Shown: positions 13,621 through 64,000, numbered from the stretch's first letter. The stretch: DNA of 64,000 nt from Magallana gigas (GCF_963853765.1 NC_088854.1:3286001-3350000), one strand, 5' to 3'. Program-made: numbers and translations. The notes: a model not told the origin generated them from the letters alone.

Positions 13621-14695
13621 GGGTTTTATTTCTCAAATAAAGAAAGAAAAAAAACTGAATAGCATTGCAGTTGCATAAATCTGAAGTGAAATGCAAAATT
13701 GACGGCATTGACAAAGGGGTAGACATCGCACAGGGATTCTACAAGATTCATCAGGAGGTAAAATGACACGAAATGCCAGTGAACTATTGACCGGTAAAAT
13801 TCTAACATTAAGAGTTACGGCATGCTAATAGCTAAAAAAAAAAAATGAAAAATTGCCGAAATATTAAAGGATCAATATCTCGTAAAAATCAAAATATTGG
13901 GAATTGTCCACATCTTGTCAGTAATTTTCAACAAAGATTGGTTTTAGAAGAGAAAAGCACAGATGTGTTTCTGCTGAATGTAAGCAGAGGGAATTCTAGT
14001 CAAATAATTTCCAAAAAAACGTTCTGGTTAATATAGTAACTTGCATAAATATCTGTCCGTGCTACCTTTTTGTTTGAAAACATTTTTATATCGTACGTGC
14101 ATCTCTCCGTCTCTCCTGTATCTCGAAGGTTTGGTCGACTAACTTAAAATTTAAATAGTTACATTTTAGGTTTGCATTTTAACGCCAAACGAAGTTTTCG
14201 ACAAAAACACTACTTCTAAGTACAACAAAGTAATTCTGACAGCACTTATCCGTACAAAACATCCCATTAAGACAAAATTACGCGTAATGCCATAATATTA
14301 TGAATTCACAATAAGCTTAAGGAGTTAAATAAAACGGGCATTTTTGTTACAAGAACTGATTAGTTTTAACAGGCCAATAAATGTTAACGAACTATTTTTA
14401 TCACTTAATCAAGAATTCTTGCTATGTTTGCTGTGCTTTTAACTACATCACTGTAAAAAAAAAACCACATTAAAATAAGTTAACTGCACGTTAATTTTCC
14501 AAAATGTATTGAAAGGCTTTAAAATGTGCATAGCAAAGATCGTCAGCAAAAATCTATGTTAAATGTATCGCCAGTCTATCTTATCCCGAAATCGTCAGTC
14601 TTCCCCTCTGCACGAGCTCCAGACAGAGGAATCGCGAGTCTTCACCCCGAATGTATATAAACTCGTGCTGATATTCATATCCACAGAAATTAAAC

Positions 14696-16457
14696 ATGGC
14701 TGTTCCACCAGGAGGACCAATTGAGATCTGCTTCTCTTTTGATACTACTGGGTCGATGTCCAGTTCTATAAACGCTGTAAAAGAAACTGTGCAAGAATTG
14801 ATTCTACGACTACAGACGGACATACCCGGTCTTAGAATCGCTGTCTTCGCTCATGGTGATTATTGTGATAAAAACTCGTCATACGTCACCAAACACATTG
14901 ACTTTTCAACCGATTTGAAAGAACTGTGTAACTGGATGAAAAATGTTGAATCCATCGGCGATAGCGATGAATGTTATGAATTGGTGTTGCATGAGGTTCA
15001 AAGTCTTTCGTGGACGCCGGGATCACAGAGAGCTCTGGTGATGATTGGAGATGCAATTCCGCATGGTTTAAATTACCCAGACAATAAATTGAGATTAGAT
15101 TGGGAAGTGGAATTAGACATTAAATTGGCAGCAATGGTGAGTACTTTTATGCAATAATTAGAGTCTACACGCTTTTAATGGTAAATTAATTTCCATCTCT
15201 TATAATTGAAATCAACATTAAAAGCAAAGCCGTTTAAATTTTGGCTCATAAACACTTTTTAATTCATTCAGAGTGTCCGCGTGTACGGTGTACAATGCGG
15301 AGGTTCGGGCGATGAGAGAACCAAATACTTCTACCAAACACTGGCCAACAAGATGGCGGGCAGACAAGTGGAGTTGGAGCAGTTTTCCAACCTATTTGAC
15401 TTTATCTTGGATATTTGCTACAGAGAGAAAGCAGCAGAGTTTCTCTATGAACAGAAAGTCCGTGACAGAGATGCTAGAATGGGTCTCCATAAGGACGTGC
15501 ACGCTCTGTTCGGGGCTCTAAGAGAGGGAGAAGAAGAACCTTCAACGTCCTCGTCAACCACAGAGAAGCCAAAGTCCAGAACACTTCCATTCAAGCCAGC
15601 TCTGAAAAAGAAACCTTCGCCCACAAAGGCTCATTCCATTACCAAACTGAAGAAAAACAGTTCCCTCATTCATAAAGTCAAGAAAACCATCGCCAAAAAG
15701 AAACCCAGGTCTGCAGTCGAAAGAAAGAAGGCGAAACTCTTGTCAAAAGGTACATAGAAGTCTTTTTTCTTCTTCTTCTTCTTCTTCTTCAGAATACACC
15801 CCATTAGATTGAGATTGTTTCTCGGCCCTTAATAGAACACTTTGGCTAACTAGAGGCTTTCCATTTATCGATCCAGCCTGCTCTCTTTTTCGGGATTCCT
15901 TGGCTGGCGAAAATGTTTGTTGTATGACCACGCAGCTCTTTACCATTTGTGGTAAATTGTATTTCATAATATTTCAGATGAACAATCTTAGAAAACTGAA
16001 GAGAGAAAACGTTCCGGACACGAACTTTTCTTTAAACAAAATACAGTGGTGGCCATGGGAACTAGTCATCTCTCCCACCAAACCAGAAAACGACTCTTTG
16101 TGGACTGAAAGATACAGAGGAAGAAAGGGTTTCCGCAAAACCAGCGTCTGCGGAGGAAAGACTTTTCCTGCAGCTGTGTACGAGTTCTCTGTGAGGAAAC
16201 TTTCCGATCCTAAACGTTACGTGACATACTGTAAATTGTCGTCAGGATTCACCAAGACAAGGAGACTTTTATCTCATTCTGACGTTCGATCCCAAGTCAA
16301 CAAAATTGTTGCTTTAGGGTATTCCGTCTATGTACGACGATGTTTGTTGAATGATTCTAACAAAGACACTGTCAGGAAATCATTACTTCGATATGACTAT
16401 GCTTGGAAGCGAGTTACAAATGTTAGAGATTCGAAAAGAGATATATCAGTAGCATAA
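14696..16457 (+). pseudogene. Array copy 1 (edge): diverged vWA / Lys-rich / GIY-YIG-like gene, frameshifted before exon 3
   Basis: Exons 14696-15136, 15272-15749, 15978-16457. Exon 2 is 478 nt instead of 495 (6-nt and 11-nt deletions), so splicing gives ..SK-DEQS*. Also TGGGD->IGD in the vWA loop and a 4-codon deletion in exon 3. Confidence 0.75.
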
Positions 16458-18652
16458 TTTCTGTCATGTTATTTATTCTATGTCGTTTCTATTGTACTTG
16501 TGGTGCATTTTTATATCAGAATATAGATTCTGAATTTGTTGTTGTTTTTAAAAAAAAAACAAATATGAATACACCTCTTACTTATGTCACTGTACAAATT
16601 TCACGACATGCCACTGGTATATTTTAAGCTTCTTAAAGTAAAATAGTTCATGAAATATTTCAAATTAGGAATTGAATGGAAAATTGAATAGCATTGCAAT
16701 TGTGAAAATCAGAAGTGAAGTGCAAACCTTACGGCATTGACGAAAGGGTGGCATCGCAAGGGAATCTGCAAGATTGAACGGGGAGCTAATATAAGACGAA
16801 ATGCCGGTGAACTGTTGACCAGTAGAATTCTGACATTGACAGCTACGGCGTGCTGATAGTAGGGATTGTAAATATTTTGTACTAATAAAACTGGGTAAGC
16901 TTGACAAAGCGAAAGAATAAAATAAATTGTCGAAATATTAAAGGATCAATGTCTCATAAAAATCAAAGTATTGGAAATTGTTCACACATCTTGTCAGTAT
17001 TTTCCACAAAGATTGGTTTTAGATTCTTTAAGGAGAAAAACAGAGATGTGTTTCTGCTGAATGATGATTCTAGTTATTTTATTTAAAAAAAACTTTTCTG
17101 GATATAGTAACTTACGTAAATATTTGTCCCGTGTTACCTTAAAGTGTTGTTTTGAAACACACACGTAAATTTTGAACTGCGTCAAGGAAATATTAGTTTC
17201 ATTATTATTACGCAAAATTCACTTTAACTGCCTATCTATTGAAACTCCGTGACTATACTGAGAATACAGTCCTTTGAAATGCAAACAAGGATCGCTCCAT
17301 GTCTTTTTCTAATTCAAACTTTATGTACAAATTATTGACATTTTCTCATATACTTAGGTTACAGTGCATACACATCACATATTCACTTCATTTAAGATAT
17401 AAGTATAAACACAGTCACATACCGAAGATAAAAATGCACATGTACAGACAAGTGTATACACCGACAAACAGACATATATATACACAAACAATCTCGAATA
17501 CTTTATTTATCAACCATGGAAGTTTGAGTATTTTTAGTAAAGGGGGGGGGGGTGGAGAAAAAGAGGGGAACACTATCTATCAAAAGTCATACATATGCAA
17601 GAGGATACATAATAGTATACTTATATTTTCTTTTGCTATAATTTGATTACAATATGCTTGCAGCTATTATAAACACATTTTATAACAAGTCACAATTAGT
17701 TTGCCAATACTTTACATACTCAGCGAATTTACAATTATTAAGTAACAGTAGTTTCTCAATATGTATTCTATCAGTGACAGTTCGTTTTAACATGAGCGTC
17801 GAGAGGTTTGCGACATTCTTATATTTACTGGCAAAAATAAAATTGTTTTACTGTAATAATCGCTCCATGTTAATGGTATGTTGAAAATAGGTTGGTTCAA
17901 ATCCTTTATTTTTCTATTGGTGACTCAAAATGAACTTAAAGTGCTTGTCATATGGCATATGTATTAAACGTATGTACGATGCTCTTTATTCCGCTCTTTC
18001 TGTATAAGTAAAGAAAAACGTGGCACCAACCTTGTTCGCAACACAAACCATTATCTATAGCGTACTTGCATCTCTCCTGTATCTCGAAGGTTTGGTCGAC
18101 TAACTTGAAATTTAAATAGTTACATTTTAGGTTTGCATTTTAACACCAAACGAAGTGTTCGACAAAAACACTACTTCTCAGTACTAAAACGTTATTCTGA
18201 CAGCATTTATCGGTACAAAAAACCCCATTTAGACAAAATTACGCATAATACCAAAATATTATGAATTCACAAAAGGCTTAAAAAGTCAAATAAAACTCAT
18301 TTTTGTTACAAGAACTGATTAGTTTTAACAGGCCAATAAATGTTGGCGAACTATTACTTAATCAAGAATTCTTGCTATGTTTGCTGTGCTTTTAACTACA
18401 TCACTGTAAAAAAAACCCTTAAAATAAGTTAACTGCACGTTAATTTTCCAAAATGTATTGAAAGGCTTTAAAATGTGCATAGCAAAGATCGTCAGCAAAA
18501 ATCTATGTTAAATGTATCGCCAGTCTATCTTATCCCGAAATCGCCAGTCTTCCCCTCCAGTTCGAGACAGAGGAATCGCGAGTCTTCACCCCGAATGTAT
18601 ATAAACTCGTGCGGATACAGAACATTCATATCCACAGAAATACTCTGATCAA

Positions 18653-19733
18653 ATGAGCATGGCTGTTCCACTAGGAGGCTACAGAGAGCAAGGAGCAGAG
18701 TTTCTAGACTTCTATGAACAGGAAGTCCGTGCCAGAGATGCTAAAATGGCTCTCCATAAGGAACTGCATGCTCTCTTCGGGGCTCTAAGAGAGGGAGAAG
18801 AAGAATCTTCAACGTCCTCGTCAACCGCAGAGAAGCCAAAGTCCAGAACACTTCCATTTAAGCCAGCTCTGAAAAAGAAACCTTCGCGCACAAAGGCTCC
18901 TTCCATTACCAAAGGGAAGAAAAACAGTTCCCTCATTCATAAAGTCAAGAAAACCATCGCCAAAAAGAAACCCAGGTCTGCAGTCGATAGAAAGAAGGCA
19001 AAAGTCTTGGCCATTTCTTGTCAAAAGGTACGTAGAAGTCGTTTTTCTTCTTCAGAATACACCCCATTAGATTGAGATTGTTATCTCGGCCCTTAATAGA
19101 ACACTTTGGCTTACTAGAGGTTTTCCATTTATCGATCCAGTCTGCTTTCTTTTTCGGGATTCCTTGGCTGGCGAAAATGTTTGTTGTTTGACCACGCAGC
19201 TCTTTACCATTTGTGGTAAATTGTATTTCATAATATTTCAGATGAAAGCTCTTAGAAAACTGAAGAGAGAAAACGTTCCGGACACGAACTTTTCTTTAAA
19301 CAAAATACAGTGGTCCCCATGGGAACTAGTTATCTCTCCCACCAAACCAGAAAACGACTCTTTGTGGACTGAAAGATACAGAGGAAGAAAGGGTTTCCGC
19401 AAAACCAGCGTCTGCGGAGGAAAAACTTTTCCTGCAGCTGTGTACGAGTTCTCTGTGAGGAAACTTTCCGATCCTAAACGTTACGTGACATACTGTAAAT
19501 TGTCGTCAGGATTCACCAAGACAAAGTGTTGGGAATCGAGACTTTTATCTCATTCTGACGTTCGATCCCAAGTCAACAAAATTGTTGCTTTAGGGTATTC
19601 CGTCTATGTACGACGATGTTTGTTGAATGATTCTAACAAAGACACTGTCAGGAAATCATTACTTCGATATGACTATGCTTGGAAACGAGTTACAGATGTT
19701 AGAAATTCGCATAGAGATATATCAGTAGCATAA
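18653..19733 (+). CDS. Array copy 2: vWA-less variant (in-frame 705-bp deletion), ~288 aa, Lys-rich + C-terminal domain
   Basis: Exons 18653-19027 and 19242-19733. Junction ccactaggagg|ctacagagag fuses codon 9 to exon 2; 570 coding nt plus the 135-nt intron 1 are lost and the frame is preserved. Confidence 0.75.
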
Positions 19734-21878
19734 TTTCTGTCATGTTATTTATTCTATGTCGTTTCTATAGTACTTGTGTTGCGTTTTGATATCAGAATAT
19801 TGATTCTGAATTTGTTGTTGTTGTTTTTAAGTAAAACAAATATGAATGCACCTCTTACTTATGTCACTTTACAAATTTCACGACATGCCACTGGTATATT
19901 TTAAGCTTCTTGAAGTAAAATAGTTCATGAAATATATCAAATAAGGAATTGAATGGAAAATTGAATAGCATTGCAATTGTGAAAATCAGAAGTGAAGTGC
20001 AAACTTTACGGCATTGACGAAATGGTGGAATCGCACGGGAATCTGCAAGATTCAACAGGGAGCTAATATAACACGAAATGCCGGTGAACTGTTGACCAGT
20101 AGAATTCTGACATTGACAGCTACGGCGTGCTGATAGTAGGGATTGTAAATATTTTGTAGTAATAAGACTGGGTAAGCTTGATAAAGCTAAAAATTAACAA
20201 AAATTGTCGAAATGTTAAAAGGATCAATATCTCACAAAAATCAAAGTATTGGAAATTGTTCACACATCTTGTCAGTAATTTTCCACAAAGATTGATTAAG
20301 ATTCTTTAAGGCAAAAAAATGGAGATCTGATTCTGCTGAATGTAAGCATGCAGAAATGATTCTAGTCACAGTATTTAAAAAAACTGTTCTGGATATAGTA
20401 ACTTACGTAAATATTTGTCCAGTGTTACCTTAAAGTGTTGTTTTGAAACACACACGTAAATTTTGAACTGCGTCGAGGAAATATTAATTTCATTATTATT
20501 ACGCAAAATTCACTTGAACTACCAATCTATTGAAACTGTGTGACTATACCGAGATTACAGTCCTTTGAAACGCAAACAAGGATCGCTCCATGTTTTTTTT
20601 ATTCAAACTTTCATGTACAAATTATTGGCATTTTCTCATATACTTAGGTTAGAGTGCATACACATCACATATTCACTTACTTTAAGATATAATGTATAAA
20701 CATCGACAAACAGACATGTATATGCACAAACAATCTCGAATACTTTCTTTATCAACCATGGAAGTTTGAGTATTTTTAGTTAAGAAGGGGGGGGGGGTGA
20801 GGGTGTGTAGGAGGGCGGAGAAAAAGAGGGGAACACTATCTATCAAAAGTCATACATATGCAAGAGGATACATAATAGTAGACTTATATTTTCTTTTGCT
20901 ATGATTTGATTAAATATCCTTGCAGCTATTATAAACACATTTTATAACAAGTAACAAATAGTTTGCCAATACTTTTAATACTCAGCAAATTTACAATTCT
21001 TAAGTAACAGTAGTTTCTCAATATGTATTCAATCAGTGACAGTTCGTTTTAACATGAGCGTAGTGAGGTTTGGGACATTCTTATATTTACTGGCAAAAAT
21101 AAATTGTTTTACTGTAAGAATCGCTCCATGTTAATGTTCATGTTAATGGTATGTTGAAAATAGCTTGGTTCAAATCCTTTATTTTTCTATTGGTGACTCA
21201 AAATGAACTGAAAGTTCCTGTCATATGGCATATGTGTTAAACGTATGTACGATGCTCTCTATTCCGCTCTTTCTGTATATGTTAAGAAAAACGTGGCACG
21301 AACCTTGTTCGCAACACAAAACATTCTTTATAGCGTACATGCATCTCTCCTGTATCTCGAAGGTTTGGTTGACTAACTTCAGATTTAAAAAGTTACATTT
21401 TAGGTTTGCATTTTAACACCAAACGAAGTTTTGGACAAAACCACTACTTCTCAGTACCAAAACGTTATTCTGACAGCACTTATCGGTACAAAAAACCCCA
21501 TTTAGACAAAATTACGCATAATACCAAAATATTATGAATTCACAAAAGGCTTAAAAAGTCAAATAAAATGGGCATTTTTCTTACAAGAACTGATTAATCT
21601 TAACAGGCCAATAAATGTTGGCGAACTATTTTTATTAGTTAATCAAGAATTCTTGCTATGTTTGCTGTGCTTTTGACTACATCACTGTAAAAAAAACTTA
21701 AAATAAGTTAACTGCACGTTAATTTTCCAAAATGTATTGAAAGGCTTTAAAATGTGCATATCAAAGATCGTCAGCAAAAATCTATGTTAAATGTATCGCC
21801 AGTCTATCTTATCCCGAAATCGCCAGTCTTCCTCATGCACGAGCTCGAGACAGGAATCGCGAGTCTTCACCCCGAATG

Positions 21879-21911
21879 TATATAAACTCGTGCGGATACA
21901 GAACATTCATA
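21879..21911 (+). promoter_or_regulatory. Core promoter of the array gene (TATA box + initiator), repeated in every unit
   Basis: TATATAAA at 21879 (55 nt before the ATG) and a TCAT Inr-like motif whose A is 30 nt downstream (21909). Same arrangement at 45749 and in the other units. Confidence 0.6.
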
Positions 21912-21933
21912 TCCACAGAAATACCCTGATTTA

Positions 21934-23749
21934 ATGAACATGGCTGTTCCACCAGGAGGACCAATGGAGATCTGCTTCTCTTTTGATACTACTGGGTCGA
22001 TGTCCAGTTCTATAAACGCTGTAAAAGAAAATGTGCAAGAATTGATTCTACGACTACAGACGGACATACCCGGTCTTAGAATCGCTGTCTTCGCTCATGG
22101 TGATTATTGTGATAAAAACTCGTCATATGTCACCAAACACATTGACTTTTCAACCGATTTGAAAGAACTGTGTAACTGGGTGAAAAATGTTGAATCCACG
22201 GGTGGCGGCGATAGCGATGAATGTTATGAATTGGTGTTGCATGAGGTTCAAAGTCTATCGTGGACGCCGAGATCACAGAGAGCTCTGGTGATGATTGGAG
22301 ATGCAAATCCGCATGGTGTAAATTACCCAGACAATAAATTGAGATTAGATTGGGAAGTGGAATTAGACAAATTGGCAGCAATGGTGAGTACTTTTATGCA
22401 ATAATTAGAGTATACACGCTTTTGATGGTAAATTAATTTCGATCACTTATAATTCAAAGCAACATTAAAAGCAAAGCAGTTTAAATTTTGGCTCATAAAC
22501 ACTTTTCATCTCATTCAGAGTGTCCGCGTGTACGGTGTACAGTGCGGAGGTTCGGGCGATGAGAGAACCAAAAACTTCTACCAAACACTGGCCAACAAGA
22601 CGGCGGGCAGACGAGTGGAGTTGGAGCAGTTTTCCAACTTATTTGATTTTATCATGGCTATTTGCTACAGAGAGCAAGGAGCAGAGTTTCTAGACCTCTA
22701 TGAACAGGAAGTCCGTGCCAGAGATGCTAGAATGGGTCTCCATAAGGACGTGCACGCTCTGTTCGGGGCTCTAAGAGAGGGAGAAGAAGAACCTTCAACT
22801 TCCTCGTCAACCGCAGAGAAGCCAAAGTCCAGAACACTTGCATTCAAGCCAGCTCTGAAAAAGAAACCTTCGCTCACAAAGGCTCCTTCCATTACCAAAG
22901 GGAAGAAAAACAGTTCCCTCATTCATAAAGTCAAGAAAACCATCGCCAAAAAGAAACCCAGCTCTGCAGTCGATAGAAAGAAGGCGAAACTCTTGGCCAT
23001 TTCTTGTCAAAAGGTATGTAGAAGTCTTTTTTCTTCTTCTTCTTCCTCTTCCTCTTCTTCTTCTTCTTCTTCTTCTTCAGAATACACCCCATTAGATTGA
23101 AAATGTTGCTCGACCCTTAAAAGAACCCTTGGCTAACCAGAGGTTTTCTATTTATTGATCCAGCCTGCTCTCTTTTTTTTTGGCTGGCAAAAATGTTTGT
23201 TGTATGACCACGCAGCTCTTTACCATTTGTGGTAAATTGTATTTCATAATATTTCAGATGAACAATCTTAGAAAACTGAAGAGAGAAAACGTTCCGGACA
23301 CGAACTTTTCTTTAAACAAAATACAGTGGTCCCCATGGGAACTAGTTATCTCTCCCACCAAACCAGAAAACGACTCTTTGTGGTCTGAAAGATACAGAGG
23401 AAGAAAGGGTTTCCGCAAAACCAGCGTCTGCGGAGGAAAAACTTTTCCTGCAGCTGTGTACGAGTTCTCTGTGAGGAAACTTTCCGATCCTAAACGCTAC
23501 GTGACATACTGTAAATTGTCGTCAGGATTCACCAAGACAAGGTGTTGGGAATCGAGACTATTATCTCATTCTGACGTTCGATCCCAAGTCAACAAAATTG
23601 TTGCTTTAGGGTATTCCGTCTATGTACGACGATGTTTGTTGAATGATTCTAACAAAGACACTGTCAGGAAATCATTACTTCGATATGACTATGCTTGGAA
23701 GCGAGTTACAAATGTTAGAGATTCGAAAAGAGATATATCAGTAGCATAA
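21934..23749 (+). CDS. Array copy 3: intact 3-exon gene, 478-aa vWA / Lys-rich linker / ET-type GIY-YIG-like protein
   Basis: Exons 21934-22383, 22519-23013, 23258-23749; both introns phase 0 (ATG|gtgagt..ttcag|AGT; AAG|gtatgt..ttcag|ATG). MIDAS motif FSFDTTGSM, plus TGGGD and IGDA. AATAAA at 23844. Confidence 0.88.
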
Positions 23750-24474
23750 TTTGTGTCATGTTATTTATTCTATGTCGTTTCTATTGTACTTGTGGTGCAT
23801 TTTTATATCAGAATATAGATTCTGAATTTGTTGTTGTTTTTCAAATAAAACAAATATGAATGCACCTCTTACTTATGTCACTTTACAAATTTCACGACAT
23901 GCCACTGGTATATTTTAAGCTTCTTAAAGTAAAATAGTTCATGAAATATATCAAATAAGGAATTGAATTGAAAATTGAATAGCATTGCAATTGTGAAAAT
24001 CAGAAGTGAAGTGCAAACCTTACGGCATTGACGAAAGGGTGGCATCGCAAGGGAATCTTCAAGATTCAAAGGGGAGCTAATATAACACAAAATGCCGGTC
24101 AACTGTTGACCGGTAGAATTCTGACATTGACAGCTACGGCGTGCTATAAGTAGGGATTGTAAACATTTTGTAGTAATAAGACTGGGTAAGCTTGGCAAAG
24201 CTAAAAAAAAAATGAAAATTTGGCGAAATATTAAAGGATCAATATCTCACAAAAATCAAAGTAATGGAAATTGTTCACATCTTGTCAGTAATTTTCCACA
24301 AAGATTGGTTTTGGATTCTTTAAAGAGAAAAACACAGATGCATTTCTGCTGAATGTAAGTATGCAGAAATGATTCTAGTCACATTATTGAAAGAAAACTG
24401 TACTCGTTATAGTAACTTGCTTAAATATCTGTCCCGTGTTAGCTTAAAGTGTTGTTTTGAAACACACACGTAAA

Positions 24475-25413
24475 GAACAAGTGCACTTAAGCTATAGAGA
24501 ATGGGCCCTTTTTGAGTGCCGTTTATATGTAGAAAATATCAACAAATTGCTTTTTTCTCGTAATAGTTAAGCACTCATGGATACTTCTGATTTATATGCA
24601 CGCTTAATTTTACCAAAATTAGCATACAATTTAAAAAATTGAGGATTTTTAAATGCCTATAAATAATCTAAATCCGGAAAAATCGAACCGAACCTACTTG
24701 AATTGTGTCTATTTAAATCAGAGGGAGGAGACATTTAAATCAACATTGCTCTGTTGGTGGATCGATTGGCGCGTTTGCTGAATTATACTTATGTATTATT
24801 TTACGTTTTATAAAAATCGAATGAAGCTTTGAAGTTGCATATTTCCATAGTGACAAACAAACATTCCTGACCATACAAAGATGATGGAAAGTGATCTAAA
24901 ACGTGTCAATGTTTTACAGTGAGCACATTTGACAAACGTTTACCTGGATAGAAACCTCGTGATTGTTTGAAATAATTTATGCATGCGTGAGTTCAAACAT
25001 GGGTCACGCAAGTAATAGCTTTCGCTTGCTATAGGAAAAATCTTGAAATTTTCATACGTTTTTCATTTTTTAGGTACCAGCCTAACCGAGTACAAACTTC
25101 TTTCTTTCACAGGAGTTTTCTAAATGTATAATGCGTATTTTGTCTTTTCCACAAGTTTGTACTCGGTTAGGCTGACAGTAAACAAAGGCTTTAAAATGAA
25201 TGCCTGTCCTCGATTTACTATACAAAATCACGAATGTCTGCTGACCCCTACTATGTTTTAAAGCTTCGTGCTTTTTATAAACAATAAATTCAGCGCTAAA
25301 ACTTGCTAATTCTTATGGAATAAATATCAATAGATAATGTTAGGGGAAAAAATATGCTTAATTTGATTCTTCATTTTTTCACTTTTTATCGGGGCCCATA
25401 ATTGCACTCGTCC
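24475..25413. mobile_element. 939-bp insertion with imperfect TIRs and no target duplication
   Basis: Empty site cgtaaa|ttttgaac in the other units. Termini gaacaagtgcactt / aattgcactcgtcc (11/14 inverted match). Contains a nested 97-bp element. Confidence 0.85.
25078..25174. mobile_element. 97-bp mini-element with perfect 22-bp TIRs nested in the 939-bp insertion (second copy 40997-41093)
   Basis: cagcctaaccgagtacaaactt ... aagtttgtactcggttaggctg, flanked by AC on both sides (possible 2-bp TSD). Confidence 0.7.
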
Positions 25414-25438
25414 TTTTGAACTGCGTCGAGGAAATATT

Positions 25439-51618: not shown

Positions 51619-53833
51619 TTTCTGTCATGTTATTTATTCTATGTCGTTTCTTTAGTACTTGTGTTGCGTTTTTATATCAGAATATTGATTCTGAAGTTGT
51701 TGTTGTTTTTCAAATAAAACAAATATGAATGCACCTCTTACTTATGTCACTTTACAAATTTCACGACATGCCACTTGTATATTTTAAGCTTCTTAAAGTA
51801 AAATAGTTCATGAAATATATCAAGTAAGGAATTGAATTGAAAATTGAATAGCATTGCAATTGTGAAAATCAGAAGTGAAGTGCAAACCTTACGGCATTGA
51901 CAAAAGGGTGGCATCGCAAGGGAATCTTCAAGATTCAAAGGGGAACTAATATAACACGAAATGCCGGTCAACTGTTGACCGGTAGAATTCTGACATTGAC
52001 AGCCACGGCGTGCTATTAGTAGGGATTGTAAACATTTTGCAGTAATAAGACTGGGTAAGCTTGGCAAAGCTAAAAAAAATGAAAATTTGGCGAAATATTA
52101 AAGGATCAATATCTCACAAAAATCAAAGTTTTGCAAATTGTTCACATCTTGTCAGTAATTTTCCACAAAGATTGGTTTTAGATTCCTTAAAGAGAAAAAC
52201 ACAGATGTGTTTCTGCTGAATGTAAGTATGCAGAAATGATTCTAGTCACAGTATTTAAAGAAAACTGTACTCGTTATAGTAACTTGCTTAAATATCTGTC
52301 CCGTGTTACCTTAAAGTGTTGTTTTGAAACACACACGTAAATTTTGAATTGCGTCGAGGAAATATTAATTTCATTATTATTAGGCAAAATTCACTTGAAC
52401 TACCAATCAATTGAAACTGCGTGACTATACTGAGATTACAGTTCTTTGAAATGCAAACAAGGATCGCTCCATGTTTTTTTTTAATTCAAACTTTCATGTC
52501 CAAATTATTCACATTTTCTCATATACTTAGTTTACAGTGCATACACATCACATATTCACTTCATTTAAGATATAAGTATGAACACAGTCACATACCGAAG
52601 ATAAAAATGCACATGTACAGACAAGTGTATACAGCGACAAACAGACATATATGCACAAACAATCTCGAATACTTTATTTATCAACCATGGAAGTTTGCGT
52701 ATTTTTAGTTAAGAGGTGGGTGGGGGAGAGGGGGACACTATCTATCAAAAGTCATACATATGCAAAAGGATACATAATAGTATACTCATATTTTCTTTTG
52801 CTATAATTTGATTACAATATCCTTGCAGCTATTATAAACAGTTTATAACAAATCACAAATAGTTTGCCAATACTTTTCATACTCAGCAAATTTACAATTC
52901 CTAAGTACAGTAGTTTCTCAAGATGTATTCTATCAGTGACAGTTCGTTTTAACATGAGCGTCGAGAGGTTTGGGACATTCTTAAACTTACTGGCAAAAAT
53001 AAATTGTTTTACTGTAAGAATCGCTCCATGTTAATGTTCATGTTAATGGCATGTTGAAAATAACTTGGTTCAAATCCTTTATTTTTCGATTGGTGACTCA
53101 AAATGAACTTAAAGTGCTTGTCATATGGCATATGTATTAAACGTATGTACGATGCTCTCTATTCCGCTCTTTCTGTATAAGTAAAGAAAAACGTGGCACC
53201 AACCTTGTTCGCAACACAAACCATTATCTATAGCGTACTTGCATCTCTCCTGTATCTCGAAGGTTTGGTCGACTAACTTGAAATTTAAATAGTTACATTT
53301 TAGGTTTGCATTTTAACACCAAACGAAGTGTTCGACAAAAACACTACTTCTCAGTACCAAAACGTTATTCTGACAGCACTTATCGGTACAAAAAACCCCA
53401 TTTAGACAAAATTACGCATAATACCAAAATATTATGAATTCACAAAAGGCTTAAAAAGTCAAATAAAATGGGCATTTTTCTTACAAGAACTGATTAATCT
53501 TAACAGGCCAATAAATGTTGGCGAACTATTTTTATTAGTTAATCAAGAATTCTTGCTATGTTTGCTGTGCTTTTGACTACATCACTGTAAAAAAAACTTA
53601 AAATAAGTTAACTGCACGTTAATTTTCCAAAATGTATTGAAAGGCTTTAAAATGTGCATAGCAAAGATCGTCAGCAAAAATCTATGTTAAATGTATCGCC
53701 AGTCTATCTTATCCCAAAATCGCCAGTCTTCCCCATGCACGAGCTCGAGACAGGAATCGCGAGTCTTCACCCCGAATGTATATAAACTCGTGCGGATACA
53801 GAACATTCATATCCACAGAAATACCCTGATCAA

Positions 53834-55633
53834 ATGAACATGGCTGTTCCACCAGGAGGACCAATGGAGATCTGCTTCTCTTTTGATACTACTGGGTCGA
53901 TGTCCAGTTCTATAAACGCTGTAAAAGAAAATGTGCAAGAATTGATTCTACGACTACAGACGGACATACCCGGTCTTAGAATTGCTGTCTTCGCTCATGG
54001 TGATTATTGTGATAAAAACTCGTCATATGTCACCAAACACATTGACTTTTCAACCGATTTGAAAGAACTGTGTAACTGGGTGAAAAATGTTGAATCCACG
54101 GGTGGCGGCGATAGCGATGAATGTTATGAATTGGTGTTGCATGGGGTTCAAAGTCTATCGTGGACGCCGAGATCACAGAGAGCTCTGGTGATGATTGGAG
54201 ATGCAAATCCGCATGGTGTAAATTACCCAGACAATAAATTGAGATTAGATTGGGAAGTGGAATTAGACAAATTGGCAGCAATGGTGAGTACTTTTATGCA
54301 ATAATTAGAGTATACACGCTTTTGATGGTAAATTAATTTCGATCACTTATAATTCAAAGCAACATTAAAAGCAAAGCAGTTTAAATTTTGGCTCATAAAC
54401 ACTTTTCATCTCATTCAGAGTGTCCGCGTGTACGGTGTACAGTGCGGAGGTTCGGGCGATGAGAGAACCAAAAACTTCTACCAAACACTGGCCAACAAGA
54501 CGGCGGGCAGACGAGTGGAGTTGGAGCAGTTTTCCAACTTATTTGATTTTATCATGGCTATTTGCTATAGAGAGCAAGGAGCAGAGTTTCTAGACCTCTA
54601 TGAACAGGAAGTCCGTGCCAGAGATGCTAGAATGGGTCTCCATAAGGACGTACACGCTCTGTTCGGGGCTCTAAGAGAGGGAGAAGAAGAACCTTCAACT
54701 TCCTCGTCAACCGCAGAGAAGCCAAAGTCCAGAACACTTCCATTCAAGCCAGCTCTGAAAAAGAAACCTTCGCTCACAAAGGCTCCTTCCATTACCAAAC
54801 TGAAGAAAAACAGTTCCCTCATTCATAAAGTCAAGAAAACCATCGCCAAAAAGAAACCCAGCTCTGCAGTCGATAGAAAGAAGGCGAAACTCTTGGCCAT
54901 TTCTTGTCAAAAGGTACGTAGAAGTCTTTTTTCTTCTTCTTCTTCTTCTATTTCAGAATACACCCCATTAGATTGAAAATGTTTCTCGACCCTTAAAAGA
55001 ACACTTTGGCTAACCAGAGGTTTTCTATTTATCGATCCAGCCTGCTCTCTTTTTCGGGATTCCTTGGCTGGCAAAAATATTTGTTGTATGACCACGCAGC
55101 TCTTTACCATTTGTGGTAAATTGTATTTCATAATATTTCAGATGAACGCTCTTAGAAAACTGAAGAGAGAAAACGTTCCGGACACGAACTTTTCTTTAAA
55201 CAAAATACAGTGGTCCCCATGGGAACTAGTTATCTCTCCCACCAAACCAGAAAACGACTCTTTGTGGTCTGAAAGATACAGAGGAAGAAAGGGTTTCCGC
55301 AAAACCAGCGTCTGCGGAGGAAAGACTTTTCCTGCAGCTGTGTACGAGTTCTCTGTGAGGAAACTTTCCGATCCTAAACGCTACGTGACATACTGTAAAT
55401 TGTCGTCAGGATTCACCAAGACAAGGTGTTGGGAATCGAGACTTTTATCTCATTCTGACGTTCGATCCCAAGTCAACAAAATTGTTGCTTTAGGGTATTC
55501 CGTCTATGTACGACGATGTTTGTTGAATGATTCTAACAAAGACACTGTCAGGAAATCATTACTTCGATATGACTATGCTTGGAAGCGAGTTACAAATGTT
55601 AGGGATTCGCAAAGAGATATATCAGTAGCATAA
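53834..55633 (+). CDS. Array copy 8: intact 478-aa gene
   Basis: Exons 53834-54283, 54419-54913, 55142-55633. Confidence 0.88.
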
Positions 55634-57849
55634 TTTCTGTCATGTTATTTATTCTATGTCGTTTCTTTAGTACTTGTGTTGCGTTTTTATATCAGAATAT
55701 TGATTCTGAAGTTGTTGTTGTTTTTCAAATAAAACAAATATGAATGCACCTCTTACTTATGTCACTTTACAAATTTCACGACATGCCACTGGTATATTTT
55801 AAGCTTCTTAAAGTAAAATAGTTCATGAAATATATCAAGTAAGGAATTGAATTGAAAATTGAATAGCATTGCAATTGTGAAAATCAGAAGTGAAGTGCAA
55901 ACCTTACGGCATTGACAAAAGGGTGGCATCGCAAGGGAATCTTCAAGATTCAAAGGGGAACTAATATAACACGAAATGCCGGTCAACTGTTGACCGGTAG
56001 AATTCTGACATTGACAGCCACGGCGTGCTATTAGTAGGGATTGTAAACATTTTGCAGTAATAAGACTGGGTAAGCTTGGCAAAGCTAAAAAAAAATGAAA
56101 ATTTGGCGAAATATTAAAGGATCAATATCTCACAAAAATCAAAGTTTTGCAAATTGTTCACATCTTGTCAGTAATTTTCCACAAAGATTGGTTTTAGATT
56201 CTTTAAAGAGAAAAACACAGATGTGTTTCTGCTGAATGTAAGTATGCAGAAATGATTCTAGTCACAGTATTTAAAGAAAACTGTACTCGTTATAGTAACT
56301 TGCTTAAATATCTGTCCCGTGTTACCTTAAAGTGTTGTTTTGAAACACACACGTAAATTTTGAATTGCGTCGAGGAAATATTAATTTCATTATTATTAGG
56401 CAAAATTCACTTGAACTACCAATCAATTGAAACTGCGTGACTATACTGAGATTACAGTTCTTTGAAATGCAAACAAGGATCGCTCCATGTTTTTTTTTAA
56501 TTCAAACTTTCATGTCCAAATTATTCACATTTTCTCATATACTTAGTTTACAGTGCATACACATCACATATTCACTTCATTTAAGATATAAGTATGAACA
56601 CAGTCACATACCGAAGATAAAAATGCACATGTACAGACAAGTGTATACAGCGACAAACAGACATATATGCACAAACAATCTCGAATACTTTATTTATCAA
56701 CCATGGAAGTTTGCGTATTTTTAGTTAAGAGGTGGGTGGGGGAGAGGGGGACACTATCTATCAAAAGTCATACATATGCAAAAGGATACATAATAGTATA
56801 CTCATATTTTCTTTTGCTATAATTTGATTACAATATCCTTGCAGCTATTATAAACAGTTTATAACAAATCACAAATAGTTTGCCAATACTTTTCATACTC
56901 AGCAAATTTACAATTCCTAAGTACAGTAGTTTCTCAAGATGTATTCTATCAGTGACAGTTCGTTTTAACATGAGCGTCGAGAGGTTTGGGACATTCTTAA
57001 ACTTACTGGCAAAAATAAATTGTTTTACTGTAAGAATCGCTCCATGTTAATGTTCATGTTAATGGCATGTTGAAAATAACTTGGTTCAAATCCTTTATTT
57101 TTCGATTGGTGACTCAAAATGAACTTAAAGTGCTTGTCATATGGCATATGTATTAAACGTATGTACGATGCTCTCTATTCCGCTCTTTCTGTATAAGTAA
57201 AGAAAAACGTGGCACCAACCTTGTTCGCAACACAAACCATTATCTATAGCGTACTTGCATCTCTCCTGTATCTCGAAGGTTTGGTCGACTAACTTGAAAT
57301 TTAAATAGTTACATTTTAGGTTTGCATTTTAACACCAAACGAAGTGTTCGACAAAAACACTACTTCTCAGTACCAAAACGTTATTCTGACAGCACTTATC
57401 GGTACAAAAAACCCCATTTAGACAAAATTACGCATAATACCAAAATATTATGAATTCACAAAAGGCTTAAAAAGTCAAATAAAATGGGCATTTTTCTTAC
57501 AAGAACTGATTAATCTTAACAGGCCAATAAATGTTGGCGAACTATTTTTATTAGTTAATCAAGAATTCTTGCTATGTTTGCTGTGCTTTTGACTACATCA
57601 CTGTAAAAAAAACTTAAAATAAGTTAACTGCACGTTAATTTTCCAAAATGTATTGAAAGGCTTTAAAATGTGCATAGCAAAGATCGTCAGCAAAAATCTA
57701 TGTTAAATGTATCGCCAGTCTATCTTATCCCAAAATCGCCAGTCTTCCCCATGCACGAGCTCGAGACAGGAATCGCGAGTCTTCACCCCGAATGTATATA
57801 AACTCGTGCGGATACAGAACATTCATATCCACAGAAATACCCTGATCAA

Positions 57850-59649
57850 ATGAACATGGCTGTTCCACCAGGAGGACCAATGGAGATCTGCTTCTCTTTT
57901 GATACTACTGGGTCGATGTCCAGTTCTATAAACGCTGTAAAAGAAAATGTGCAAGAATTGATTCTACGACTACAGACGGACATACCCGGTCTTAGAATTG
58001 CTGTCTTCGCTCATGGTGATTATTGTGATAAAAACTCGTCATATGTCACCAAACACATTGACTTTTCAACCGATTTGAAAGAACTGTGTAACTGGGTGAA
58101 AAATGTTGAATCCACGGGTGGCGGCGATAGCGATGAATGTTATGAATTGGTGTTGCATGGGGTTCAAAGTCTATCGTGGACGCCGAGATCACAGAGAGCT
58201 CTGGTGATGATTGGAGATGCAAATCCGCATGGTGTAAATTACCCAGACAATAAATTGAGATTAGATTGGGAAGTGGAATTAGACAAATTGGCAGCAATGG
58301 TGAGTACTTTTATGCAATAATTAGAGTATACACGCTTTTGATGGTAAATTAATTTCGATCACTTATAATTCAAAGCAACATTAAAAGCAAAGCAGTTTAA
58401 ATTTTGGCTCATAAACACTTTTCATCTCATTCAGAGTGTCCGCGTGTACGGTGTACAGTGCGGAGGTTCGGGCGATGAGAGAACCAAAAACTTCTACCAA
58501 ACACTGGCCAACAAGACGGCGGGCAGACGAGTGGAGTTGGAGCAGTTTTCCAACTTATTTGATTTTATCATGGCTATTTGCTATAGAGAGCAAGGAGCAG
58601 AGTTTCTAGACCTCTATGAACAGGAAGTCCGTGCCAGAGATGCTAGAATGGGTCTCCATAAGGACGTACACGCTCTGTTCGGGGCTCTAAGAGAGGGAGA
58701 AGAAGAACCTTCAACTTCCTCGTCAACCGCAGAGAAGCCAAAGTCCAGAACACTTCCATTCAAGCCAGCTCTGAAAAAGAAACCTTCGCTCACAAAGGCT
58801 CCTTCCATTACCAAACTGAAGAAAAACAGTTCCCTCATTCATAAAGTCAAGAAAACCATCGCCAAAAAGAAACCCAGCTCTGCAGTCGATAGAAAGAAGG
58901 CGAAACTCTTGGCCATTTCTTGTCAAAAGGTACGTAGAAGTCTTTTTTCTTCTTCTTCTTCTTCTATTTCAGAATACACCCCATTAGATTGAAAATGTTT
59001 CTCGACCCTTAAAAGAACACTTTGGCTAACCAGAGGTTTTCTATTTATCGATCCAGCCTGCTCTCTTTTTCGGGATTCCTTGGCTGGCAAAAATATTTGT
59101 TGTATGACCACGCAGCTCTTTACCATTTGTGGTAAATTGTATTTCATAATATTTCAGATGAACGCTCTTAGAAAACTGAAGAGAGAAAACGTTCCGGACA
59201 CGAACTTTTCTTTAAACAAAATACAGTGGTCCCCATGGGAACTAGTTATCTCTCCCACCAAACCAGAAAACGACTCTTTGTGGTCTGAAAGATACAGAGG
59301 AAGAAAGGGTTTCCGCAAAACCAGCGTCTGCGGAGGAAAGACTTTTCCTGCAGCTGTGTACGAGTTCTCTGTGAGGAAACTTTCCGATCCTAAACGCTAC
59401 GTGACATACTGTAAATTGTCGTCAGGATTCACCAAGACAAGGTGTTGGGAATCGAGACTTTTATCTCATTCTGACGTTCGATCCCAAGTCAACAAAATTG
59501 TTGCTTTAGGGTATTCCGTCTATGTACGACGATGTTTGTTGAATGATTCTAACAAAGACACTGTCAGGAAATCATTACTTCGATATGACTATGCTTGGAA
59601 GCGAGTTACAAATGTTAGGGATTCGCAAAGAGATATATCAGTAGCATAA
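57850..59649 (+). CDS. Array copy 9: intact 478-aa gene
   Basis: Exons 57850-58299, 58435-58929, 59158-59649. Confidence 0.88.
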
Positions 59650-61865
59650 TTTCTGTCATGTTATTTATTCTATGTCGTTTCTTTAGTACTTGTGTTGCGT
59701 TTTTATATCAGAATATTGATTCTGAAGTTGTTGTTGTTTTTCAAATAAAACAAATATGAATGCACCTCTTACTTATGTCACTTTACAAATTTCACGACAT
59801 GCCACTGGTATATTTTAAGCTTCTTAAAGTAAAATAGTTCATGAAATATATCAAGTAAGGAATTGAATTGAAAATTGAATAGCATTGCAATTGTGAAAAT
59901 CAGAAGTGAAGTGCAAACCTTACGGCATTGACAAAAGGGTGGCATCGCAAGGGAATCTTCAAGATTCAAAGGGGAACTAATATAACACGAAATGCCGGTC
60001 AACTGTTGACCGGTAGAATTCTGACATTGACAGCCACGGCGTGCTATTAGTAGGGATTGTAAACATTTTGCAGTAATAAGACTGGGTAAGCTTGGCAAAG
60101 CTAAAAAAAAATGAAAATTTGGCGAAATATTAAAGGATCAATATCTCACAAAAATCAAAGTTTTGCAAATTGTTCACATCTTGTCAGTAATTTTCCACAA
60201 AGATTGGTTTTAGATTCTTTAAAGAGAAAAACACAGATGTGTTTCTGCTGAATGTAAGTATGCAGAAATGATTCTAGTCACAGTATTTAAAGAAAACTGT
60301 ACTCGTTATAGTAACTTGCTTAAATATCTGTCCCGTGTTACCTTAAAGTGTTGTTTTGAAACACACACGTAAATTTTGAATTGCGTCGAGGAAATATTAA
60401 TTTCATTATTATTAGGCAAAATTCACTTGAACTACCAATCAATTGAAACTGCGTGACTATACTGAGATTACAGTTCTTTGAAATGCAAACAAGGATCGCT
60501 CCATGTTTTTTTTTAATTCAAACTTTCATGTCCAAATTATTCACATTTTCTCATATACTTAGTTTACAGTGCATACACATCACATATTCACTTCATTTAA
60601 GATATAAGTATGAACACAGTCACATACCGAAGATAAAAATGCACATGTACAGACAAGTGTATACAGCGACAAACAGACATATATGCACAAACAATCTCGA
60701 ATACTTTATTTATCAACCATGGAAGTTTGCGTATTTTTAGTTAAGAGGTGGGTGGGGGAGAGGGGGACACTATCTATCAAAAGTCATACATATGCAAAAG
60801 GATACATAATAGTATACTCATATTTTCTTTTGCTATAATTTGATTACAATATCCTTGCAGCTATTATAAACAGTTTATAACAAATCACAAATAGTTTGCC
60901 AATACTTTTCATACTCAGCAAATTTACAATTCCTAAGTACAGTAGTTTCTCAAGATGTATTCTATCAGTGACAGTTCGTTTTAACATGAGCGTCGAGAGG
61001 TTTGGGACATTCTTAAACTTACTGGCAAAGATAAATTGTTTTACTGTAAGAATCGCTCCATGTTAATGTTCATGTTAATGGCATGTTGAAAATAACTTGG
61101 TTCAAATCCTTTATTTTTCGATTGGTGACTCAAAATGAACTTAAAGTGCTTGTCATATGGCATATGTATTAAACGTATGTACGATGCTCTCTATTCCGCT
61201 CTTTCTGTATAAGTAAAGAAAAACGTGGCACCAACCTTGTTCGCAACACAAACCATTATCTATAGCGTACTTGCATCTCTCCTGTATCTCGAAGGTTTGG
61301 TCGACTAACTTGAAATTTAAATAGTTACATTTTAGGTTTGCATTTTAACACCAAACGAAGTGTTCGACAAAAACACTACTTCTCAGTACCAAAACGTTAT
61401 TCTGACAGCACTTATCGGTACAAAAAACCCCATTTAGACAAAATTACGCATAATACCAAAATATTATGAATTCACAAAAGGCTTAAAAAGTCAAATAAAA
61501 TGGGCATTTTTCTTACAAGAACTGATTAATCTTAACAGGCCAATAAATGTTGGCGAACTATTTTTATTAGTTAATCAAGAATTCTTGCTATGTTTGCTGT
61601 GCTTTTGACTACATCACTGTAAAAAAAACTTAAAATAAGTTAACTGCACGTTAATTTTCCAAAATGTATTGAAAGGCTTTAAAATGTGCATAGCAAAGAT
61701 CGTCAGCAAAAATCTATGTTAAATGTATCGCCAGTCTATCTTATCCCAAAATCGCCAGTCTTCCCCATGCACGAGCTCGAGACAGGAATCGCGAGTCTTC
61801 ACCCCGAATGTATATAAACTCGTGCGGATACAGAACATTCATATCCACAGAAATACCCTGATCAA

Positions 61866-63665
61866 ATGAACATGGCTGTTCCACCAGGAGGACCAATGGA
61901 GATCTGCTTCTCTTTTGATACTACTGGGTCGATGTCCAGTTCTATAAACGCTGTAAAAGAAAATGTGCAAGAATTGATTCTACGACTACAGACGGACATA
62001 CCCGGTCTTAGAATTGCTGTCTTCGCTCATGGTGATTATTGTGATAAAAACTCGTCATATGTCACCAAACACATTGACTTTTCAACCGATTTGAAAGAAC
62101 TGTGTAACTGGGTGAAAAATGTTGAATCCACGGGTGGCGGCGATAGCGATGAATGTTATGAATTGGTGTTGCATGGGGTTCAAAGTCTATCGTGGACGCC
62201 GAGATCACAGAGAGCTCTGGTGATGATTGGAGATGCAAATCCGCATGGTGTAAATTACCCAGACAATAAATTGAGATTAGATTGGGAAGTGGAATTAGAC
62301 AAATTGGCAGCAATGGTGAGTACTTTTATGCAATAATTAGAGTATACACGCTTTTGATGGTAAATTAATTTCGATCACTTATAATTCAAAGCAACATTAA
62401 AAGCAAAGCAGTTTAAATTTTGGCTCATAAACACTTTTCATCTCATTCAGAGTGTCCGCGTGTACGGTGTACAGTGCGGAGGTTCGGGCGATGAGAGAAC
62501 CAAAAACTTCTACCAAACACTGGCCAACAAGACGGCGGGCAGACGAGTGGAGTTGGAGCAGTTTTCCAACTTATTTGATTTTATCATGGCTATTTGCTAT
62601 AGAGAGCAAGGAGCAGAGTTTCTAGACCTCTATGAACAGGAAGTCCGTGCCAGAGATGCTAGAATGGGTCTCCATAAGGACGTACACGCTCTGTTCGGGG
62701 CTCTAAGAGAGGGAGAAGAAGAACCTTCAACTTCCTCGTCAACCGCAGAGAAGCCAAAGTCCAGAACACTTCCATTCAAGCCAGCTCTGAAAAAGAAACC
62801 TTCGCTCACAAAGGCTCCTTCCATTACCAAACTGAAGAAAAACAGTTCCCTCATTCATAAAGTCAAGAAAACCATCGCCAAAAAGAAACCCAGCTCTGCA
62901 GTCGATAGAAAGAAGGCGAAACTCTTGGCCATTTCTTGTCAAAAGGTACGTAGAAGTCTTTTTTCTTCTTCTTCTTCTTCTATTTCAGAATACACCCCAT
63001 TAGATTGAAAATGTTTCTCGACCCTTAAAAGAACACTTTGGCTAACCAGAGGTTTTCTATTTATCGATCCAGCCTGCTCTCTTTTTCGGGATTCCTTGGC
63101 TGGCAAAAATATTTGTTGTATGACCACGCAGCTCTTTACCATTTGTGGTAAATTGTATTTCATAATATTTCAGATGAACGCTCTTAGAAAACTGAAGAGA
63201 GAAAACGTTCCGGACACGAACTTTTCTTTAAACAAAATACAGTGGTCCCCATGGGAACTAGTTATCTCTCCCACCAAACCAGAAAACGACTCTTTGTGGT
63301 CTGAAAGATACAGAGGAAGAAAGGGTTTCCGCAAAACCAGCGTCTGCGGAGGAAAGACTTTTCCTGCAGCTGTGTACGAGTTCTCTGTGAGGAAACTTTC
63401 CGATCCTAAACGCTACGTGACATACTGTAAATTGTCGTCAGGATTCACCAAGACAAGGTGTTGGGAATCGAGACTTTTATCTCATTCTGACGTTCGATCC
63501 CAAGTCAACAAAATTGTTGCTTTAGGGTATTCCGTCTATGTACGACGATGTTTGTTGAATGATTCTAACAAAGACACTGTCAGGAAATCATTACTTCGAT
63601 ATGACTATGCTTGGAAGCGAGTTACAAATGTTAGGGATTCGCAAAGAGATATATCAGTAGCATAA
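61866..63665 (+). CDS. Array copy 10: intact 478-aa gene
   Basis: Exons 61866-62315, 62451-62945, 63174-63665. Confidence 0.88.
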
Positions 63666-64000
63666 TTTCTGTCATGTTATTTATTCTATGTCGTTTCTTT
63701 AGTACTTGTGTTGCGTTTTTATATCAGAATATTGATTCTGAAGTTGTTGTTGTTTTTCAAATAAAACAAATATGAATGCACCTCTTACTTATGTCACTTT
63801 ACAAATTTCACGACATGCCACTGGTATATTTTAAGCTTCTTAAAGTAAAATAGTTCATGAAATATATCAAGTAAGGAATTGAATTGAAAATTGAATAGCA
63901 TTGCAATTGTGAAAATCAGAAGTGAAGTGCAAACCTTACGGCATTGACAAAAGGGTGGCATCGCAAGGGAATCTTCAAGATTCAAAGGGGAACTAATATA

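Follow-up and report, generated by a model that had tools for sequence, protein, structure and literature searches.

A homogenised tandem array of a conserved gene for a vWA and GIY-YIG-fold protein on chromosome C2 of the oyster Magallana gigas

Main finding

We analysed a 64,000-nucleotide window of chromosome C2 of the oyster Magallana (Crassostrea) gigas (NC_088854.1:3286001-3350000; positions below are counted from its first nucleotide) and found in it a head-to-tail tandem array of a 4,015-4,016-bp unit that carries a complete protein-coding gene. A search of the whole genome placed all 13 gene-bearing units at a single locus (C2:3300693-3361711), ten of them within the window, and ten of the 13 genes are intact, with three exons encoding a protein of 478 amino acids. 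This protein joins an N-terminal vWA domain, a disordered lysine-rich linker and a C-terminal domain with a GIY-YIG fold. RNA contigs confirm the splicing of the gene, comparable arrays are present in other oysters, and the coding sequence is strongly conserved between genera. On balance, and without great confidence, we favour the interpretation that this is a conserved cellular gene in a long-lived, homogenised array that is maintained for dosage, and that its product is a nuclear protein that binds or nicks DNA.

Structure of the array

In a self-BLAST of the window, the units of the array core (44320-64000) were 99.4-100% identical to one another, while the older units (14110-24474 and 33347-40393) were 90-97% identical to the core units. 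Comparison with the next 20 kb of the chromosome placed the right end of the array at extended coordinate 77482, which is 13.5 kb past the window, and added three further full units and a final partial unit of 1,437 bp. A preliminary description, made from the sequence of the window alone, had proposed at least ten head-to-tail copies with a 4,015-4,016-bp period, near identity among copies 6 to 10, a decayed copy at the edge and coding exons free of transposable elements, and each of these points agrees with what we found. It had also called the array actively amplifying. The near identity is real, but amplification is only implied by it, and it would be explained equally well if a stable array underwent gene conversion or unequal exchange. 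The features of the array in the window are as follows.

13766-14109, plus strand: decayed spacer remnant at the left array edge, with 82-83% matches to unit positions 1-360 and weak translated matches to M. angulata spacer
14110-16795, plus strand: unit 1, a partial unit with an edge pseudogene; exons at about 14696-15136, 15272-15749 and 15978-16457; the RefSeq model has a 310-amino-acid product
16796-20070, plus strand: unit 2, with a vWA-less gene; ATG at 18653, fused exon 18653-19027, exon 3 at 19242-19733, open frame of 288 amino acids
20071-24474, plus strand: unit 3, with an intact gene for 478 amino acids (exons 21934-22383, 22519-23013 and 23258-23749) and, after it, the initial 389 bp of the following unit
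24475-28400, minus strand: 5'-truncated non-LTR (long terminal repeat) retrotransposon of the long interspersed nuclear element (LINE) type, 3.9 kb, in the spacer after unit 3; open reading frames (ORFs) 25622-27142 and 27225-27803; Pfam zf-RVT 5e-9, RVT_1 1.5e-19
28656-33346, no strand assigned: composite dispersed-repeat insertion in the spacer, 4.7 kb, with a high-copy element of about 930 bp nested inside
33347-44574, plus strand: higher-order duplicate of block 17429-28655, 99.5% identical, 11.2 kb
44320-64000, plus strand: array core in the window, units 6 to 10 (44320-47938, 47939-51953, 51954-55968, 55969-59984 and 59985-64000), each with an intact gene
56488-57038, no strand assigned: old interspersed repeat of about 550 bp, present in the spacer of every unit, with dozens of genomic copies at 78-86% identity

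The intact genes are those of units 3, 5 and 6 to 13, and the six distinct proteins that these ten open copies encode agree with six RefSeq proteins. The remaining copies are one frameshifted gene at the edge and two that lack the vWA domain. In the edge pseudogene (unit 1) the first ATG is gone, and exon 2 is 478 nt long, so that the frame is shifted going into exon 3. In units 2 and 4 the vWA domain has been removed by a deletion that joins the ninth codon of exon 1 to mid-exon 2 without a change of frame, the deletion junction of the short form lying at 18677/18678; the resulting 288-amino-acid translation is identical to RefSeq XP_065930595.1. The second vWA-less gene (exon 3 at 35160-35651) lies in the duplicate block at 33347-44574, together with a second copy of the unit-3 gene (exons 37853-38302, 38438-38932 and 39177-39668) and a copy of the LINE at 40394-44319. 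Because block 17429-28655 includes the LINE and recurs with it, the higher-order duplication is younger than the LINE insertion. All three insertions (24475-28400, 28656-33346 and 40394-44319) are intergenic, and the exons are untouched.

Identical 4-kb repeats are hard to assemble, and the copy number is known here from the assembly. A region of this kind could therefore be an artefact in which one or two genes have been over-expanded, or else a mobile element that has captured a gene. Several results speak against an artefact: arrays are present in independent assemblies of four species (see below), a DNA contig from an unrelated oyster sample spans the unit junction at 59984/59985, and the copies show graded, ordered differences and nested insertions. 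As for a mobile element, the unit occupies a single locus and contains no terminal repeats, reverse transcriptase or transposase, while its gene has conserved introns and has orthologues across phyla. We rejected a transposable element as the identity of the unit, since there are no dispersed copies and the only reverse transcriptase ORFs belong to the separate LINE in the spacer. We regard the artefact or mobile-element explanation as the least probable of those considered here.

Gene model and transcription

The features of the gene are given for one copy in the array core, which we used as a reference.

57795-57802, plus strand: TATATAAA, candidate core-promoter element 48 bp upstream of the ATG, recognised from sequence only
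57850-58299, plus strand: exon 1, N-terminal part of the vWA domain with a MIDAS-like (metal ion-dependent adhesion site) motif D18-x-T20-x-S22; Pfam VWA_4 1.1e-9
58435-58929, plus strand: exon 2, remainder of the vWA domain (to residue 238 or so) and disordered lysine-rich linker (residues 239-318)
59158-59649, plus strand: exon 3, GIY-YIG-fold domain (PF19239 type) and stop codon
59744-59764, plus strand: AATAAA (59744-59749) and poly(A) addition site; a transcript contig ends in an A run at 59764, and a contig of RNA run X15 also ends at 59764

The reference gene has GT-AG introns, all junctions are in phase 0, and the 478-amino-acid product differs at two residues from XP_065930600.1 (M. 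gigas, 478 amino acids). The genes of the array are annotated only as 'uncharacterized protein' (RefSeq) or 'VWFA domain-containing protein', and a literature search by LOC numbers, accessions and UniProt identifiers returned no mention of the gene.

Spliced contigs from SRR27190608, SRR11244612, ERR1758952, ERR12311769 and run X15 showed that both predicted junctions are used, and the three-exon model of the preliminary description proved exact. In Logan contigs from three runs, the whole protein is encoded in 1.5-1.6 kb, with exactly the two predicted introns removed. Six RNA runs, drawn from four studies, contained about 70% of the words sampled, a proportion equal to the exonic share. The polyadenylation signal likewise stands as first described, for two transcript contigs stop at 59764, 15 nt past the AATAAA. 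The proposed TATA box and initiator fared less well. The element TATATAAA is present, but a start there is unconfirmed, as transcript contigs begin either at the element or 105 nt upstream of it. RNA contigs also cover the upstream spacer, at lower depth, and position 57038, the end of the 550-bp repeat, shows depth spikes and loose ends in both DNA and RNA runs. For the vWA-less copies no transcript contig was found; one candidate contig proved to be of the full-length type.

Concerted evolution and selection

The preliminary description had taken the array for a lineage-specific amplicon. This is contradicted by arrays of the same gene in three other oysters and by a protein architecture that is widespread in Lophotrochozoa. 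M. angulata has its array at the corresponding place on the chromosome, with units of about 3,975 bp, of which at least 5.5 are present. The array of Saccostrea echinata has a period of 3,756 bp and at least nine copies, and it reaches the start of the contig. In Ostrea edulis the unit at the fetched locus is 5,034 bp long, and more near-identical genes lie elsewhere on that chromosome. Between genera the alignment is limited to the exons and the unit spacers do not align; a translated comparison of the M. gigas flanks with the short Ostrea flank detected no synteny.

Within each Magallana species the copies are more alike than between the two: core-unit identity is 99.4-100% in M. gigas and 99.9-100% in M. 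angulata, against about 95.8% between them. In a nucleotide tree of the units, the M. gigas core units group together and so do those of M. angulata, with M. gigas units 1 and 2, its two oldest, outside both groups. In the protein tree, copies cluster by species or genus, although some Saccostrea copies predate the split of its two species. To judge from their sequences, the near-identical arrays in these oyster species indicate concerted evolution. The distribution of differences between old and new M. gigas units is informative in this respect. The stretch that begins 450 bp upstream and ends with exon 3 is about 99% identical, intron 1 reaching 100%, against 93% in the spacer. High identity over a gene tract that includes intron 1 points to conversion or exchange, and not to selection alone, as its probable cause.

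The arrays of histone genes, 5S ribosomal DNA (rDNA) and U small nuclear RNA (snRNA) genes are built in the same way. They too consist of full transcription units of a few kb, arranged head to tail and homogenised within species, and they too have divergent copies at the edge. The oyster unit differs from them in that it yields a spliced, polyadenylated messenger RNA for a protein of 478 amino acids, in about 13 copies, with no linked RNA gene. Searches with Rfam and ARAGORN detected no transfer RNA (tRNA) genes or Rfam families in the unit, and with no RNA gene in it we rejected a linked 5S, snRNA or tRNA gene as the driver of the array.

We estimated the ratio of nonsynonymous to synonymous substitution rates (dN/dS) from orthologous coding sequences with the same three exons. 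Between oyster genera, where synonymous sites are near saturation and the values are accordingly rough, dN/dS was 0.08-0.10 for the whole protein. By part, it was 0.04-0.05 in the vWA domain, 0.09-0.11 in the C-terminal domain and 0.2-0.35 in the linker; the comparison of M. gigas with M. angulata gave 0.22. On these estimates the protein is under strong purifying selection, and the constraint is clear. The low dN/dS argues against a rapidly evolving conflict gene. The suggestion in the preliminary description that the array might be conflict-driven thus finds no support, the copies being homogenised and not diversified.

An array of this kind could also perpetuate itself by unequal crossing-over with no benefit from dosage, one or a few copies being enough for the function. 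The pseudogene, the two truncated copies, the transposon insertions and the 11-kb duplication are all signs of ongoing structural turnover, the length of the unit is different in every genus, and the sampled RNA libraries contain few reads from the gene. It is harder to see why, in that case, multi-copy arrays in which almost all copies are open should occur in four species of three genera, or why ten of the 13 M. gigas copies should be intact under strong coding selection. We consider such passive persistence rather unlikely, and continue to favour an array of a conserved gene maintained for dosage.

Protein family

A search with the closest full-length relative returned 1,899 proteins, with no studied member among them. 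The best 120 of the 1,899 come from bivalves, gastropods, a chiton, the brachiopod Lingula, the nemertean Lineus and the annelid Owenia. Family members are mostly 450-500 amino acids long, and all those sampled have the layout of a vWA domain followed by the C-terminal domain. Domain searches and models bear out the earlier view of a three-part product (vWA, lysine-rich linker, GIY-YIG-like) with no characterised animal relative. Stand-alone C-domain proteins exist as well, and stand-alone and repeated PF19239 proteins are common in bivalves; the vWA-less oyster copies therefore repeat a layout seen elsewhere.

Within the M. gigas genome, distant paralogues of the arrayed gene are found as a pair 4.8 kb apart on C5 (C5:51168606-51175138) and as a single gene on C4 (C4:16851361-16855275), with no further amplification. 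They are 52-55% identical to the arrayed gene in the vWA part and 29-32% in the C-domain.

The vWA domain

Exon 1 alone matches the Pfam family VWA_4 (PF25106) with 38.6 bits against a cutoff of 27 (E 1.1e-9). An AlphaFold2 model built with 50 relatives was confident for the vWA domain (residues 1-238) and for the C-terminal domain, with a disordered linker (239-318) between them. The vWA model has a Rossmann-like alpha/beta fold, with a predicted local distance difference test score (pLDDT) mostly of 80-97, and in Foldseek it matches integrin beta I-like domains over about 245 columns at E 1e-10. The MIDAS-like residues D18-T19-T20-G21-S22 and D123 do not vary among the 50 relatives, and T89 hardly varies; DxTxS is a variant of DxSxS. 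By its residues, then, the putative metal site is MIDAS-like, and the vWA domain is probably a protein-docking module. The N-terminus of the protein leads directly into strand 1, so there is no signal peptide, and the family alignment shows conservation along the whole length of the protein.

Structure searches of BFVD extended these matches to viruses. The vWA domain matches a protein of the crAss-like phage cr106_1 (E 8e-22 to about 1e-21, 28-30% identity) and a Megavirus R811-like protein (E 2e-11, root-mean-square deviation 2.8). The oyster domain thus resembles the vWA domains of the giant-virus 'ariadne-like RING finger protein R811' type and of phage VWA_4 proteins. The viral proteins pair their vWA domain with an RBR ubiquitin ligase or other modules, whereas the oyster protein pairs it with GIY-YIG. 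As a separate observation, this vWA subtype is common to animals and viruses, including the R811-like RBR ligases of giant viruses.

These affinities bear on a possible role in immunity. Bivalve immune genes are often tandemly expanded, and the array could encode an immune or antiviral effector in which the vWA domain serves as sensor or dock for a foreign or danger signal and the GIY-YIG domain cuts invading nucleic acid, with pathogen pressure (for example from oyster herpesvirus) raising the number of copies. Conflict systems show the pattern of a vWA domain combined with an effector domain that varies, giant-virus RBR ligases and phage proteins have this vWA subtype too, some scallop and clam homologues have been named automatically after Mimivirus R811, and the abundance of stand-alone and repeated PF19239 proteins in bivalves would suit such a role. 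A dN/dS of about 0.1 and homogenised copies do not fit an arms race, however, and no expression data tie the gene to infection, nor did the literature search return any paper that mentions it. We therefore think an immune effector improbable, about as much so as an array that merely perpetuates itself, and retain the dosage-maintained nuclear gene as the preferred reading.

The C-terminal domain

Modelled alone, the C-terminal domain reached a pLDDT of 93.7 and has a beta-beta-alpha-alpha-beta-alpha core behind an N-terminal extension. When it was compared with 48,161 solved chains, seven of the nine best matches were GIY-YIG nucleases: T4 EndoII (2wsh, Z 7.5 over 111 residues), Hpy188I, UvrC, I-TevI, AtGRXS16, PD-T4-3 and Eco29kI, the other GIY-YIG chains in the top nine being 3oqg, 1ycz, 1ln0, 2lwf, 9u75 and 3mx4. 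A Z-score below 8 is not decisive alone, and the argument for the fold rests on the consistency of the matches. VIA-align and the AlphaFold libraries were needed to detect them. Foldseek against PDB with the C-domain returned nothing at E<=0.001, though GIY-YIG entries ranked early; sequence searches of PDB with the protein and with a C-domain profile gave chance matches only, and a feature search of the ESM Atlas with exon 3 gave no usable match.

Among Swiss-Prot models, the only clear matches are Arabidopsis ET3 (E 3.9e-5, template modelling (TM) score 0.63) and ET2 (E 1.7e-4). In AlphaFold clusters and the ESM Atlas, mollusc relatives came first, followed by coral, Lingula and plant ET-like proteins, and a plant cluster that is 100% PF19239 matches the C-terminal domain at TM 0.70. 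By sequence, residues 319-478 match PF19239 marginally, scoring 22.0 bits where the cutoff is 21.4; translated exon 3 of the reference copy scores 20.6 and falls just short. The match is firmer in relatives, 41 of 60 having it at E<0.1 (best 1.2e-12).

The GIY tyrosine in strand 1 corresponds to Y383 (Y in 51/60 relatives, F in 6/60) and the YIG tyrosine in strand 2 to Y399 (Y in 37/60, F in 15/60). The glycine of YIG is replaced, by C400 in M. gigas and most commonly by Ser among the relatives. Conserved positions of the C-domain are Y383, E384 (60/60), Y399, W412, E413, R439 (60/60), the YDYAW motif and R473; D459 in YDYAW (54/60) is a metal-ligand candidate by spacing alone. The oyster domain thus has the core and the strand tyrosine positions of canonical GIY-YIG nucleases (T4 EndoII, Hpy188I, the N-terminal domain of UvrC, I-TevI and Eco29kI), and its N-terminal extension resembles those of EndoII and Hpy188I. 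In contrast, E384, R439 and YDYAW of the oyster family have no described counterpart in those nucleases, and there is no detectable sequence match to the solved structures.

The nearest named structural relatives of the C-domain are the plant EFFECTOR OF TRANSCRIPTION proteins (Arabidopsis ET1, ET2 and ET3), through their PF19239 domain. In a passage citing Ivanov et al. 2008, one article states that the ET2 domain was reported to nick DNA, and it describes ET proteins as plant-specific (PMC6585611). The domain lies in the N-terminal half of ET proteins, whereas in the oyster protein it is C-terminal, after the vWA domain, and sequence identity is 15-19%. The sequence, a Pfam scan and the model revealed no Cys/His-rich ET repeats in the oyster protein and no further domain after GIY-YIG. 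We rejected membership of the plant ET family, as one domain is held in common and the Cys/His ET repeats are missing.

GIY-YIG domains serve homing endonucleases and Penelope-like elements, which raises the idea that the encoded nuclease nicks its own locus and so drives amplification and homogenisation, loosely in the manner of a homing endonuclease. The gene is arrayed in several oysters, and a Mercenaria relative in which PF19239 domains are joined to a transposase-type helix-turn-helix (HTH) could be read the same way. No evidence of a target site was found, though, amplification of the paralogues on C5 and C4 has not gone past a pair, homologues in most species look like ordinary genes, and the catalytic competence of the domain is unproven. 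Such self-directed nicking seems to us very unlikely. The Mercenaria mercenaria protein itself (XP_053393955.1, 991 amino acids) has HTH_Tnp_1 joined to five consecutive PF19239 domains.

Maintenance and function of the array

In the explanation that we prefer, a conserved cellular gene whose copies are retained for dosage, each unit is one transcription unit for an intracellular three-part protein of 478 amino acids, and unequal exchange and gene conversion would keep the copies alike, as in histone or 5S arrays. The disordered lysine-rich linker would probably be a nuclear-targeting or DNA-contact segment. The protein would act in the nucleus by binding or nicking DNA, with a partner held by its vWA domain. 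The many copies would be kept because the product is needed in bulk at some stage or in some tissue.

Several observations weigh against parts of this explanation. The copy count is that of the assembly, and contig depth was read with no single-copy control. Expression is low in the samples covered: two poly(A) libraries gave 16 reads per run from about 13 million sampled, and high dosage is therefore not supported by the sampled libraries. Beyond Magallana, the sequences do not distinguish an ancestral array from repeated independent amplification. The nuclear location is a prediction from the lysine-rich linker and the absent signal peptide, and the DNA-binding character put forward in the preliminary description is likewise a prediction. 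In the C-terminal domain, the Arg expected in helix 1 is R415 in M. gigas, but it is R in only 27 of 60 relatives. The canonical catalytic Glu was not located, with no conserved Glu after strand 3 in the 60 relatives, and the domain as modelled may bind DNA rather than cut it.

A more far-reaching version is that animals possess a large, unstudied family of DNA-nicking proteins in which an ET-type GIY-YIG domain, a type discussed until now only for 'plant-specific' epigenetic regulators, is fused to an intracellular vWA docking domain. On this view the histone-style oyster array is ancient, evolves in concert and supplies nicking that the animal requires in large amounts, perhaps for the chromatin of germline or embryo or as a defence against DNA viruses. 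We offer this tentatively, as a possibility that falls well short of probable.

Whatever its function, the locus should be useful for study. Few protein-coding genes apart from histones form homogenised arrays, and the oyster array provides a compact, fully sequenced case for concerted evolution. It combines divergence from centre to edge, a conversion tract over promoter and gene that leaves out the spacer, a nested duplication, and arrays in a sister species and sister genera. The nuclease-like domain ties an unstudied family to the plant ET proteins, for which DNA nicking and an influence on DNA methylation have been reported, and through this link a role in DNA or chromatin processing in molluscs becomes testable by standard assays. 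Copy number is likely to vary at the locus, which is of note for oyster genomics.

Repeats and neighbouring sequence

The array is not a catalogued C. gigas satellite. The published satellitome comprises 52 satellite DNAs, with a longest monomer of 3,287 bp and an abundance cut-off of 0.01% of the genome (PMC8268682). We rejected this identity because the 4,016-bp unit and the total of about 64 kb are outside both limits of that survey. Tandem Repeats Finder, run on the window, did not report the array either, because its longest period is 500 bp; it reported just a 35-bp repeat, at 3359-3501, with four copies and 95% matches.

An inverted copy of the composite insertion at 28656-33346, with 100% identity, lies 36 kb to the left (C2:3273876-3278566). 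The part of about 930 bp nested in the insertion has more than 40 genomic copies with 97-100% identity, on all chromosomes, and looks like a recently active, non-autonomous element. To the left of the array, a neighbouring gene with HYR and Sushi (SCR) domains lies on the minus strand (exons 7359-7887 and 8397-8726), adjoining a run of N at 7223-7358.

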